Sequence record: ON287376.1
Reading direction: 5' to 3' (one strand)
DNA: 64,000 nt
The position numbers and the translations under genes are program-made. Below the pieces are notes generated by a model. That model was not told where the DNA came from and did not search any database. It saw nothing but the letters and a program-made list of their open reading frames with translations. Shown here in pieces: positions 13,853-64,000 of this stretch; the first letter of the stretch is position 1; each line of letters opens with the position of its first letter.

Positions 13853-13870
13853 TATATTACTTTAATGATA
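13853..13870 (+). promoter_or_regulatory. early (virion RNAP-type) promoter, TATATTAC motif
   Basis: tatattac-ttta-atgata; same motif at 28406, 36453 (variant), 45151, 50338 and 60244; TATATTAC is the described phiKZ early promoter core. Confidence 0.7.
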
Positions 13871-13946
13871 GTTGAGTAGTGGCTTCGGTCACTACTCCTA
13901 TTTTACATCTATCCTGAAATAACTATGACCAACTGAGGAGAACATT

Positions 13947-19132: not shown

Positions 19133-19543
19133 ATGAGTAAGAACGAAGAACATCACAATGCGGAAGCGCGCTTAACTGTACAATCTTTCTTCGAGGCCTT
19201 GGGTCTGCGTACTCAACCTAAGTTGCCGGAAGGGATTATTGGTTACAACGGCCAAGTAAACATTTCGTTGCTCCGTGGGATTATTAACGCGCATCCTCTG
19301 CGTCAGTTGATCCAGGTTTCTAAAGCCAAGTCTGACTTCACTAGTTTGCCTATGGCCGTGCAGGATATCGTCAAGGCACTGTCTCGTTATGAAGATAGCG
19401 AGTGGGTACTCACTAAGTTTGGGGTATTCAAGTTTAAGGTGAAGAAGCCGCAGGAAGAGATTCAAACCGTGATTGAAAAATACCGGAACGAGATTCCTAA
19501 CCACGTTTACGACAAACTGAAAAACGCATTGAAGTCGTGGTAA
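19133..19543 (+). CDS. hypothetical protein
   Basis: SD aaggag before ATG 19133 (MSKNEEHH...). Confidence 0.65.
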   Translation: MSKNEEHHNAEARLTVQSFFEALGLRTQPKLPEGIIGYNGQVNISLLRGIINAHPLRQLIQVSKAKSDFTSLPMAVQDIVKALSRYEDSEWVLTKFGVFKFKVKKPQEEIQTVIEKYRNEIPNHVYDKLKNALKSW

Positions 19544-19617
19544 ACCACTCCCTTTAATTCATTTTTTACGTCGTGTCTTATAGTGTGCTAAAAGCACACA
19601 AGACATCTCGCAAGAGG

Positions 19618-19690
19618 GGTCACGGCGGAGCCTGTGACTATTAGGGGTTAGAATGACTGAGGAATGTAATGACGAAAGGAATTCCCTAAG
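19618..19690 (+). ncRNA. repeated structured non-coding element, copy 1 of 3
   Basis: GGTCACGG-loop-CTGTGACT hairpin plus a TTAGGG...CCCTAA stem enclosing a purine-rich core; homologous to 60041 and 63857; behind a TTTTTTACG motif. Confidence 0.6.
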
Positions 19691-19756
19691 AGTACGGCTA
19701 GCTAAATACCCTAGATGAATTAGTGTGATTATAACTCAATAATCCACGTCTAAGAG

Positions 19757-20116
19757 ATGGAAAATACGATGAGAAGAAACCAAGCAGTAATCGATAAATC
19801 AATCGAAGAACTGAACGATCTGTGCATTGGTGGCCCAGAGACTAAAGAGAAAACTCTGGCAATCAGCTCTGCTATGATGCAGATCTTTACCAACGGCTTA
19901 GGCTTGATGGTAAGTGCCTCTGAGGAAGGGAAGTATCCTCTGGGCAAATACGATTCATTCGCTGAAGTAAGTTTAGCGTCTAGTCGTATCTACGGTCAGA
20001 TCGTAGTCTTCCGTGTACGCATTGGTTGGCAGGACACGACGTTCACTCGATTCGTGTTCCTGGATGAAGCAGGTGCTCCAGCCGCGGCCGTTGATGATAT
20101 CGGTACTCCGTACTAA
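19757..20116 (+). CDS. hypothetical protein
   Basis: ORF followed by a hairpin terminator. Confidence 0.6.
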   Translation: MENTMRRNQAVIDKSIEELNDLCIGGPETKEKTLAISSAMMQIFTNGLGLMVSASEEGKYPLGKYDSFAEVSLASSRIYGQIVVFRVRIGWQDTTFTRFVFLDEAGAPAAAVDDIGTPY

Positions 20117-38483: not shown

Positions 38484-39761
38484 TTGGGTGTTTATCTGTT
38501 AAATCCGGACTATGACAGGGATATCGCAGCTCTGCCTCGTCCTCCAATTATCCTCAATGATATCGACCCGGCGCATTATGAAGGTACTGATCCAGTCAAA
38601 GAACTGACCATGACCGAATATAGCGACGACTTCATTGAGACATTACCGGCGTGTGAGTGTGGCCACACCCATGGTCGGTATAATTCATCGAACGACCCAA
38701 GTATCCCTAACACGGTATGTCCGAAATGTCAGACTGAAGTGATGAGCCCAATCGATCGAGGGTTTAAATCTTCTGTGTGGCTGAGAGCACCTAACGGTGT
38801 TCGTGCGTTCATCCGTATCAATGCGTTGGTCATGTTGCTGAAGAACTTCACCCAGGAGAACTTCTCGGCAATTGAATGGCTCTGTAACACCAAATATAAG
38901 CCAACCAACGATACCAGTGCCACGTTCCGTCGGTTCAAAGAACTGAACATCCCTCGTGGCTATAATCACTTTATCGAGAACTTCGATGACATCCTGGGAG
39001 CGATGGTAGATAGTAAGATATTCAAGCCATCTGCTAACCGTAACGATGCGTTGGTGTATTTCGATAAGTTCAGGGATCTCCTGTTCCCAACCGTCCTCCC
39101 GTTGCCATCTCGCCGGTCTATCATCACGGAGCTTAGTAACAAAACTCGCTTCTGTGCTGAAGGCTATGCAGATGTTGTCGATGCCGCACGAGCTATTTAT
39201 AGCTTGGTCGGTAAAGATGAACCGCGTTATCAAGTGACTAAGGAATATCACGTATTCCGAGCACTGATGATGTTGGTGAAGTATCGGGAATATATCGACA
39301 AGAACATCCTGGGTAAGAAAGAAGGCTGGTTCCGTAAACAGATCTATGGATCTCGTACCGGACCAACTTATCGTGGCGTAGTAACGTCTATCGCGGGATC
39401 TCACGACTATGAAGAAATGCATATGCCGTGGGGGATTGCGTTAGGGGTTTATCACACCCACTTGATCGGAAAGTTAGTTCGTCGCGGATTCACCATCCAA
39501 GACTCTGAGGATCTACTGATCTCTTCAGTAGGGCGTTATAATCCGCTGATCTCCACACTGCTGGATGAGCTGATTGACGAATCTCCGTTTACGACAATTA
39601 GTGGTAAACGCGGGCTACCTCAGTTGCTGGGTCGAAATCCAACGTTGAACTTACGTTCGATTCAGAACCTGTTTGTCACCAAAATCAAAAGGGACGTGCA
39701 CGACAATACTATCGGCCTATCGCTGCTAGTGCTGAAGGCTCCGAACTGTGACTTCGACGGT
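38484..39761 (+). CDS. non-virion RNA polymerase beta' N-terminal subunit, exon 1 (phiKZ gp55-like)
   Basis: Zn-binding CECG...CPKC, KEG.FR..I.GSR, R.PTL, ending in APNCDFDG at the intron boundary. Confidence 0.9.
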
Positions 39762-40057
39762 AGAAGTAACCCAACTAAGTTGCCGTCTTAAAACTCCTTT
39801 AACTGCTGGGAACTCTTGCTAGGTAGATTGGCTACAACGTAACTGGAAACGGTAAGCGTGAATGCTTGAAAACAATCTAATAGAGACAATCAGCATCCAA
39901 GCTCCTGTAAAATGGAGAAGGTTCAACGACTATCGAAAGCACGTAACACGGATGTGGTAAACGTAGTGAGTAGAGTAGGGGAAACCCGAAACGAGGAGCA
40001 CTTGAACGATTCAAGTGAAGATATAGTCTGTTAAGTACTCGGTGCATTTAGCCGAGG
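39762..40057 (+). ncRNA. group I self-splicing intron (IA-like, no ORF), 296 nt
   Basis: P1: exon GACGGU pairs with IGS GCCGUC (39782-87), with U.G at the splice site. P AACTGCTGGGAA (39801), Q AATCAGCATCCAAG (39888), R GTTCAACGACTA (39921), S AAGATATAGTCT (40018). P3 CTCCT/AGGAG, P8 CACTTGAA/TTCAAGTG, P9 hairpin, terminal G at 40057. Confidence 0.92.
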
Positions 40058-40231: not shown

Positions 40232-40852
40232 TTGAAAATTTCTATAGTTAGCGGAGACGAGCGATCGTTCCGAGCGGCTGCGTTCGGGATGCCTGATCGT
40301 GACTCCGTAGAGCGGACATATTCTCGTCTGGAAGAATTCAGTCGTGGGTTGTCTTCTCGGGCAAGGGAAGGTCTGGAGCGTACTCGTGGGTTGATTGAAT
40401 CCATGTATGACGATACGGTGCGTAACTCGCTGCGTATTCTGGGCCGGGTTAAACGCGGGCTGTTCCGTGATGACGTTATCCAGTTCTTGGATGATCAGAC
40501 GGAAATTGCCACAGCACCGATGACCATGCGTCGTTGGATTCTGGCGCACCCATTCATCCGTAGTCGTTATGATACCCAGTCCATTGATGCTTGGGGTAGT
40601 AAACCCGGTCAGTGGGATCTGGAAGGTAAAGGCTATGAAGATCTCTTCTATCGTGCAGCGACCAATGGTCTGGCAACGAAGAACGAGAAAGGTGAATGGT
40701 GGAGCGAATATACGTTTGGTGGTTGTTCTGTTCCTGGTGCGGGTACTATCTCTCTGGAAGAGCAGATGGATATCCTGGCTACCTGGGATATTATTGACGA
40801 CTGCATCGCAGACGGAATCGATCCGACTTCAGTAATGAAAGAGCGTCTTTAA
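40232..40852 (+). CDS. conserved hypothetical protein
   Basis: SD aggagg; TTG start right after the exon 2 stop; terminator follows. Confidence 0.7.
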   Translation: MKISIVSGDERSFRAAAFGMPDRDSVERTYSRLEEFSRGLSSRAREGLERTRGLIESMYDDTVRNSLRILGRVKRGLFRDDVIQFLDDQTEIATAPMTMRRWILAHPFIRSRYDTQSIDAWGSKPGQWDLEGKGYEDLFYRAATNGLATKNEKGEWWSEYTFGGCSVPGAGTISLEEQMDILATWDIIDDCIADGIDPTSVMKERL

Positions 40853-59999: not shown

Positions 60000-60040
60000 C
60001 TCTCATTTTTTACGTACGTTTCAATTATGTGTCAGAACTT

Positions 60041-60124
60041 GGTCACGGCCCGGAGGGTCTGTGACTATTAGGGGTTTTAGAGTGAGCTAGGATGACCAAA
60101 GGGAAGACGAAGTGAGCTCCCTAA
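60041..60124 (+). ncRNA. repeated structured non-coding element, copy 2 of 3
   Basis: ggtcacggcccggagggtctgtgact-attagggg...ccctaa behind a ttttttacg motif. Confidence 0.6.
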
Positions 60125-60243
60125 ACGCGTGGATAATTAACCCCATTTAAACTAAATTGATATTCACTGGTAGATTAAGTTCTACTGGTGAGTATTGATC
60201 TATTTTGTAAAATTACCAATATACCTCCATTGGATCTCAGGTA

Positions 60244-60261
60244 TATATTACCAGATTGAAT
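60244..60261 (+). promoter_or_regulatory. early promoter for the 60.3-63.8 kb gene cluster
   Basis: ggatctca-ggta-tatattac-caga-ttgaat. Confidence 0.65.
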
Positions 60262-60317
60262 AGATTACTACAAAGAAGAATAATCTTTTAACTTAAAATT
60301 CAGGAGAAGGGTAAAAA

Positions 60318-63801: not shown

Positions 63802-63856
63802 TAATCTCTCATTTTTTACGTCACTTCTCTTTAGTTTGTCAAAACAATACCACTCA

Positions 63857-63934
63857 GGTCACGGCCGTAGGCCTGTGACTAATAAGTACCCGTATGACTG
63901 AAGAACGTAGTGATGAAAGGAATACATCTTGGGT
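63857..63934 (+). ncRNA. repeated structured non-coding element, copy 3 of 3
   Basis: ggtcacggccgtaggcctgtgact hairpin; closing stem swapped to TACCC...GGGTA; 26/30 core identity with copy 1. Confidence 0.6.
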
Positions 63935-64000
63935 AAAAAGAGAGTTAAGTAAGGTTAAATTAACTCTATTGATAAAGAGTAATAATCATGAATAATACTC

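Follow-up and report, generated by a model that had tools for sequence, protein, structure and literature searches.

Three intergenic cassettes in the genome of Serratia phage vB_SmaM-Kodama (ON287376.1; 275,052 bp; genus Moabitevirus, within Chimalliviridae) are, very probably, functional RNAs of an uncatalogued kind. They lie in the 64-kb stretch of DNA analyzed here (the window), which forms the end of the record (211,053–275,052); unless the record is named, positions are those of the window, and all features described are on the + strand. Each cassette carries a leader with conserved boxes, a first hairpin (P1), and a second hairpin in which Watson-Crick steps alternate with tandem G·A mismatches (the GA rod), and in this rod a folded + sense single strand is under selection. 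Judging from their sequences, we favor, with slightly better than even confidence, the reading that the cassettes are genus-specific, paralogous structured RNA modules, serving as leaders or as discrete RNA, that would be bound by a protein and would set the fate of their transcripts.

The motif GGTCACGG-(variable)-CTGTGACT has exactly three occurrences, at 19618, 60041, and 63857 (chance expectation 0), as does CATTTTTTACG, at 19560, 60004, and 63810, where it stands 4–17 nt past a stop codon in all three cases. The common architecture of three loci and their start soon after a stop codon, both reported in a preliminary description of this DNA, are thus present as described. From the T-run through the core, the three regions align at ∼60–70% identity and are therefore paralogs. 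The preliminary description had also proposed searching the rest of the genome with a covariance model; seven versions of the element served to build a sequence profile (nhmmer) and a covariance model, both of which found only these three sites in the whole 275-kb genome.

The phage collection contained eight near-identical Moabitevirus genomes and one diverged relative, Totoro, which is ∼79% identical to Kodama around copy 1, and the element was present at three sites per genome in all nine. No relatives outside the genus were found by blastn among 50,697 phage records. Pattern scans of IMG/VR returned, beyond chance, only the 2050HW genome; one loose scan yielded chance matches only, and a single IMG/VR match inside a coding region was inspected and judged to be chance. 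Scans of metagenomes and of GTDB genomes gave nothing above chance, and the latter thus contained no host counterpart of the element. A protein flanking the element is likewise restricted to the genus (tblastn). The earlier impression that the loci belong to no named RNA family agrees with the Rfam results: a gathering-threshold scan of the whole window with Rfam 15 found only a group I intron, away from the three loci, and permissive scans of the loci themselves produced only matches far below threshold (E 0.1 to 10). ARAGORN found no tRNA or tmRNA in the window.

Each module opens with a T-run box, the most conserved block among the three paralogs, followed 10–12 nt later by a second conserved box. 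In copy 1, the T-run box (19560–19570) lies 17 nt past the stop of the upstream ORF (19133–19543), and the remainder of the leader (19577–19616) holds the second box (TTATAGTGTGC..) together with two small hairpins specific to this copy, GTGTGC/GCACAC (19583–19599) and CTC-GNRA-GAG (19607–19616). The tetraloop of the latter is GCAA in Kodama; in Totoro it is GAAA, which preserves the GNRA form. The corresponding leader of copy 2 (60004–60038) comprises a T-run box at 60004–60014 and a TATG-containing second box at 60026–60038, and that of copy 3 (63810–63845) a T-run box at 63810–63820 and a second box at 63830–63845.

P1 follows at 19618–19639 in copy 1, where a 6-bp outer stem, a bulged U, and a 3-bp GC apical stem lead to a GGA loop. 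In copy 2 (60041–60066) the apical stem has 5 bp, including one G·U pair, and again a GGA loop, and in copy 3 (63857–63880) it has 4 bp and a GUA loop. The six outer pairs and the bulged U are identical across all copies and all genomes. Predicted folding energies are −10.4, −14.8, and −13.7 kcal/mol for copies 1, 2, and 3 (z −2.7, −2.9, and −3.8). Aligned P1 columns contain no compensatory substitution; support for the fold comes from matched C/G insertions, which give tips of 3, 5, and 4 bp in copies 1, 2, and 3, and from G·U pairs that suit the + strand only. The co-variation of the inner hairpin arms noted at the outset is therefore real, in the form of apical arms lengthened by matched insertions. 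When run on a plain MAFFT alignment of all copies, RNAalifold recovered P1 alone, because copy 2 is out of register with copies 1 and 3.

The purine-rich core 3′ of P1, which the preliminary description took to be poorly pairable, is instead a covarying hairpin in which Watson-Crick steps are combined with tandem G·A pairs. It is separated from P1 by an 11–13-nt linker, and its Watson-Crick steps of 1–4 bp stand between tandem G·A mismatches. The copy 1 rod (19651–19684) is a 34-nt hairpin with nine Watson-Crick pairs, three tandem G·A steps, and a 3-nt loop, and the minimum-energy fold of copy 1 by itself already pairs the core internally. Copy 3 (63892–63925) has a 34-nt rod of the same architecture, and copy 2 (60080–60119) has a 40-nt rod with 11 pairs and one G·A module more than the other two.

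We tested the structure ((((..((..(..((...))..)...))..)))) on an ungapped alignment of the three distinct versions of the copy-1/3 rod, namely Kodama copy 1, Totoro copy 1, and copy 3. All 27 cells were paired (27/27), and five of the nine pairs carried double changes, with no one-sided and no broken pairs. Sliding the partners by 1–3 columns, as a control, left no compensated pairs. The 11 variable columns consist entirely of the five compensated pairs and the middle loop base, and the G and A of the three internal 2 × 2 loops (one of them 2 × 3) are invariant. Under random placement of an equal number of substitutions, the probability of no broken and at least three compensated pairs was 2.5 × 10⁻⁵ for Kodama copy 1 versus Totoro copy 1 (seven substitutions) and 8 × 10⁻⁶ for copy 1 versus copy 3 (six substitutions), the two comparisons sharing one pair. 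In the copy 2 rod, 43 of 44 cells (97.7%) were paired across four variants, in which G·U is replaced by A-U and U·G by U-A, with one G·G break in Totoro. The sample thus comprises three distinct copy-1/3 sequences and four copy-2 sequences from one genus. A simple 5-bp stem closing the copy 2 core was also considered and rejected, as Yaphecito and Haymo alter both of its arms in parallel; the longer rod with its G·A steps accommodates these changes.

By the nearest-neighbor model, copies 1 and 3 have weak rods (−2.4 to −4.8 kcal/mol, z −1.0 to −1.7), and for copy 3 taken alone an alternative fold is marginally better than the rod. The copy 2 rod is more stable (−9.5 kcal/mol, z −2.8). Within the genome, a descriptor search for the rod matched copies 1 and 3 alone; in 1.05 Mb of unrelated viral DNA it matched nothing. 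The G·U pairs of P1, of the copy 2 rod, and of a 19-bp hairpin located further downstream in copy 2 are compatible with the + strand only.

Selection on the fold, as proposed in the preliminary description, is borne out by this core hairpin, with its nine pairs and five double changes, and not by the stem that had been cited for it. That stem was said to enclose the core and to keep its pairing while changing its sequence between copies. Its arms are indeed present in the window: TTAGG/CCTAA in copies 1 and 2 and TACCC/GGGTA in copy 3 can close the core in Kodama. However, a helix of equal length between the linker and the 12 nt past the core arises in 19–50% of shuffles, and in Totoro copies 1 and 2 the 3′ arm is altered, leaving 4 bp with wobble. 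A distal partner for the outer stem can be drawn in each copy, but its register shifts. Because its length lies within that of shuffled sequences and because it is lost in Totoro copies 1 and 2, the outer stem is no evidence for selection, and we rejected it as covariation.

Downstream of the rods, the copies differ. The tail of copy 1 (19685–19768) is poorly conserved, extends to the start of a downstream ORFan (19769–20116), and includes a degenerate early-promoter-like box near 19727–19747. That of copy 3 (63926–63987) has an AT-rich hairpin at 63941–63967 and a degenerate box of the same kind at ∼63955–63975. In copy 2, the rod is followed after ∼40 nt by a 19-bp hairpin that includes five G·U pairs and runs into a U tract (60156–60206). 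It folds at −21.8 kcal/mol (z −6.3), three Moabite substitutions convert its wobbles to Watson-Crick pairs, and the site is annotated as a terminator in Moabite; its sequence resembles that of an intrinsic terminator. No terminator-like site separates the element from the next gene in copies 1 and 3. No U tract follows P1 or any of the rods, and neither hairpin is called terminator-like.

The copy 2 cassette also contains a consensus box, TATATTAC-N3-ATTGAATAG, at 60244–60263, one of 13 in the genome, which is a likely early promoter of the variable genes 3′ of copy 2. The full bipartite form, (T)TTCAnGTA-TATATTAC-N3-A(A/T)TGATAG, has its 13 copies on the + strand, 40–90 nt upstream of genes, five of them in the window (13853, 28406, 45151, 50338, and 60244) and eight outside it. 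Its sequence and placement suggest that it probably serves the genus as its early (virion polymerase) promoter, and it fits the AT-rich early-promoter motif known for such phages (PMC7598289, PMC8244752). At two sites (window 13853–13900 and L130:6526–6600), the bipartite box is followed at once by a GC hairpin and a T tract ending in TATTTTAC, so that a promoter-like site immediately precedes a terminator-like one.

A T-run box followed 11–14 nt later by a TATG-type box is found at ∼6 other intergenic sites in the genome, and the pair recalls the late promoter of phiKZ, which has a TATG motif (PMC7598289). The second box reads TAG in copies 1 and 3 versus ATG in copy 2 and the similar sites. 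The T-run box resembles the tail of Kodama's intrinsic terminators and therefore need not be a promoter. As a promoter class, the combination of T-run and TATG is suggestive, not established; in copy 2, the T-run and second box together are a candidate promoter on sequence grounds. In all three copies, the interval from the stop codon to the rod is free of sigma-70-like sites. Kodama's intrinsic terminators typically end in hairpin-(C)TTATTTTAC(G/A), and TTTTACG is concentrated between genes: 12 of its 25 occurrences fall in intergenic DNA, which makes up 5.5% of the genome. A long intergenic region outside the window (record 165515–165785) shows a similar layout in unrelated sequence and may be a further small transcription unit: its T-run, which ends in ACG, is followed by a TATG box and, ∼50 nt further on, by a GC hairpin and then a consensus TATATTAC box.

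The modules lie in a mosaic context. Across six genomes the copy 2 cassette (∼60000–60271) is 97–98% identical, and the genes flanking it occur in three upstream and three downstream versions. The leader and P1 of copy 1 are 97–100% identical between Kodama and Totoro, against 60–90% for the flanking genes. At copy 3, Kodama–Totoro identity collapses just 3′ of the rod, and the downstream proteins are 40% identical. Neighboring genes share no homology among the three loci, and the genes adjoining the copies are ORFans; searches of Pfam and PHROGs assigned no family to the neighboring proteins, with the exception of a helix-turn-helix (HTH) protein adjoining copy 2 in Moabite and Totoro. In these two phages, the gene directly 3′ of the copy 2 cassette (L005:1511–2254 and L004:1301–1970) codes for a protein of 247 aa that carries a Cro/C1-type HTH domain at its C terminus; other genes occupy this place in Kodama and 2050HW. 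The reading frame of the gene 3′ of copy 3 stays open from an ATG at 63988 and passes through the origin of the circular record (into L126:1–542). This ATG is 13 codons upstream of the annotated start and agrees with the annotation of Yaphecito and Haymo, and the 2050HW record has one frameshift in the ORF.

In comparison with known systems, the element is not a member of the PeSL, K-turn, hammerhead, or CsrB-type families, and probably not of the put RNAs, and shares individual features with several of them. PeSL (promoter-early stem-loop) cassettes are found in T4-type phages at ∼50 per genome (PMC2839356, PMC4122927). They share with the Moabitevirus modules their small size, conservation, and intergenic location, a start at the stop codon of the upstream gene, the combination of a promoter-like part and a stable stem-loop, ORFan neighbors, and a position at points of insertion, deletion, or replacement between related phages. 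The stem-loop has its counterpart in P1 (−10.4 to −14.8 kcal/mol, z −2.7 to −3.8), and the junction feature in the three-plus-three gene contexts of copy 2 across six genomes and in the identity drop at copy 3; the copy number is only three per Moabitevirus genome, with ORFan neighbors. PeSL cassettes have sigma-70-type promoters, which the Moabitevirus module lacks, and the PeSL hairpin is a simple terminator, whereas the module has in addition a G·A-rich hairpin whose covariation points to selection on the RNA fold.

The put RNAs of phage HK022 are cis-acting antitermination RNAs that act on the host polymerase; they are a few paralogous two-hairpin RNAs located downstream of promoters and upstream of terminators. 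The likeness is one of layout only, two adjacent hairpins near a promoter-like box, and no sequence or Rfam similarity of the element to any antitermination RNA was found. Chimalliviridae, in contrast, transcribe with their own multisubunit polymerases (PMC7598289).

In K-turn and box C/D RNAs, tandem sheared-type G·A/A·G steps form protein-binding platforms (PMC2952850, PMC1874613). The rod likewise has tandem G·A steps flanked by Watson-Crick pairs, and copy 3 contains box-C-like and box-D-like words. It differs in having three to four G·A steps in series versus one and in lacking the 3-nt bulge beside the G·A: its steps are bordered on both sides by Watson-Crick pairs, and the sole asymmetry is one extra A. 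The Rfam C/D-box match to the element was noise (9.9 bits versus a threshold of 42, E = 6). Part of the core also resembles the 5′ half of the hammerhead core, but the base after the second G·A step is paired (columns 11–23, covarying). The hammerhead core requires an unpaired A at that base, and no hammerhead match was obtained in the Rfam scans at E up to 10. Within Chimalliviridae, dRNA-seq of phiKZ (PMC8244752) and ChmC eCLIP peaks in PhiPA3 (10.1101/2023.09.22.559000) revealed unannotated intergenic RNAs, which also come from short intergenic regions of nucleus-forming jumbo phages, regions suspected of yielding non-coding RNAs. Those are RNA signals without a defined conserved structure, whereas the Moabitevirus element has a conserved structure defined from sequence, and no sequence relation between them was found.

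Taken as structured RNA modules, the three copies would work as follows, with the transcription start, strand, and 3′ ends that we infer for them. The T-run and second box would form a phage-polymerase promoter, so that a transcript would begin with the module. The copy 2 transcript would end at the 19-bp hairpin and U tract, giving an RNA of ∼175 nt upstream of a separate early promoter; such separate transcription is plausible for copy 2 only, given its terminator-like hairpin. In copies 1 and 3, transcription would continue, and the module would be a 150–190-nt leader of the ORFan gene. A common protein, of phage or host, would bind P1 and the rod and thereby set the stability, translation, or elongation of the transcript. 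Protein binding appears the likeliest mode because the rods are marginally stable yet their G·A positions are invariant and because P1 keeps sequence as well as pairing. In addition, the modules behave as conserved junctions between swappable gene cassettes.

Alternatively, the three copies could be stand-alone trans-acting small RNAs, short transcripts that titrate or guide a protein, for instance as a sponge or decoy of a host RNA-binding protein or nuclease, and are not leaders at all. This suits copy 2, whose own terminator-like hairpin precedes a separate promoter-like box and which persists as a cassette whatever genes adjoin it, and unannotated intergenic RNA peaks are on record for another phage of the family (10.1101/2023.09.22.559000). 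We nevertheless consider it rather unlikely, as copies 1 and 3 have no terminator-like site ahead of the next gene and no host counterpart turned up in GTDB genomes. A sponge for CsrA/RsmA, one of the roles proposed in the preliminary description, is not supported, since GGA is not conserved: the P1 loop of copy 3 is GUA, covariation removes the first G of one core GGA, and the remaining core GGAs sit within the G·A pairs of the rod. The decoy and export roles proposed alongside it are neither supported nor contradicted by the data. The mosaic context fits a mainly DNA-level, PeSL-like cassette, in which the boxes and P1 would be promoter and attenuator and the shared sequence a crossover point for ORFans; the variable genes on both sides of a constant copy 2, the loss of Kodama–Totoro similarity 3′ of the copy 3 rod, and the ORFan neighbors all agree with it. 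Yet it leaves unexplained why the rod shows compensatory changes and unvarying G·A steps, which call for selection on a folded single strand, and the modules have three copies per genome rather than the ∼50 of T4-type phages (PMC2839356) and no sigma-70-type promoter. We regard a mainly DNA-level role as unlikely, and crossover at shared sequence is compatible with the structured-RNA explanation as a side effect.

By analogy with put, the element might act in cis by modifying the phage RNA polymerase for processive antitermination, allowing it to read through a downstream terminator. Two adjoining hairpins soon after a promoter-like box, the strong terminator-like hairpin ∼40 nt past the copy 2 rod and upstream of genes, and an invariant P1 stem sequence that would suit direct contact are in line with such a role. 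Set against this are the lack of sequence or Rfam similarity to antitermination RNAs and the absence of a terminator before the next gene in copies 1 and 3; moreover, we know of nothing on termination control of jumbo-phage polymerases, and we find the idea improbable. That the modules are small coding regions or relics of gene starts is less probable by far, even though the core opens with ATG and the copy 1 and 3 peptides (21 and 33 codons from 19653 and 63894) share an acidic N-terminus, with ∼10 of the first 14 residues in common. Across the five distinct versions, the reading frames have 21, 4, 7, 33, and 14 codons; that of Totoro copy 1 meets a stop at codon 5, a corresponding frame is missing from copy 2, and there is no consistent ribosome-binding site. 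Kodama–Totoro differences in copy 1 do fall at every third base, a pattern that results from the symmetric compensated pairs of the rod. With ORF length and frame differing among copies and orthologues, a conserved peptide was rejected, and the same peptide start was found nowhere else in the genome. Finally, tandem G·A pairs and GC hairpins are stable in single-stranded DNA too, and the three copies lie within 45 kb of each other, as might be the case for DNA hairpins used in replication, packaging, or recombination. This seems extremely improbable: every copy reads in the same sense as the genes around it, the many G·U positions become A·C mismatches on the opposite strand, and each element is placed precisely between one gene's stop codon and the gene that follows, beside promoter-like and terminator-like signals.

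To our knowledge, how nucleus-forming jumbo phages control their genes is little understood, with middle and late promoters barely defined and small RNAs suspected but none characterized. The mRNA of these phages must exit the phage nucleus. More speculatively, P1 and the GA rod could be the recognition element of a dedicated RNA–protein system in nucleus-forming phages, either a tag that a phage RNA-binding protein reads at the nuclear shell or a cis-acting RNA that reprograms the phage's multisubunit RNA polymerase. We think this doubtful; if true, it would be the first defined RNA signal of gene control in Chimalliviridae. The covarying three-copy module offers a concrete target in transcript maps and RNA–protein interaction data, and a hairpin with three to four serial tandem G·A steps kept by compensation is an unusual RNA architecture of structural interest. 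With one genus and three copies per genome, the general importance of the element may be small.

The group I intron detected in the window (RF00028, 57 bits; 39738–40047) lies at the 3′ end of an ORF annotated as RNA polymerase beta′ (38484–39791). The ORF that follows it (40232–40852) is annotated as hypothetical, and the frame leading in from the intron end contains a stop.
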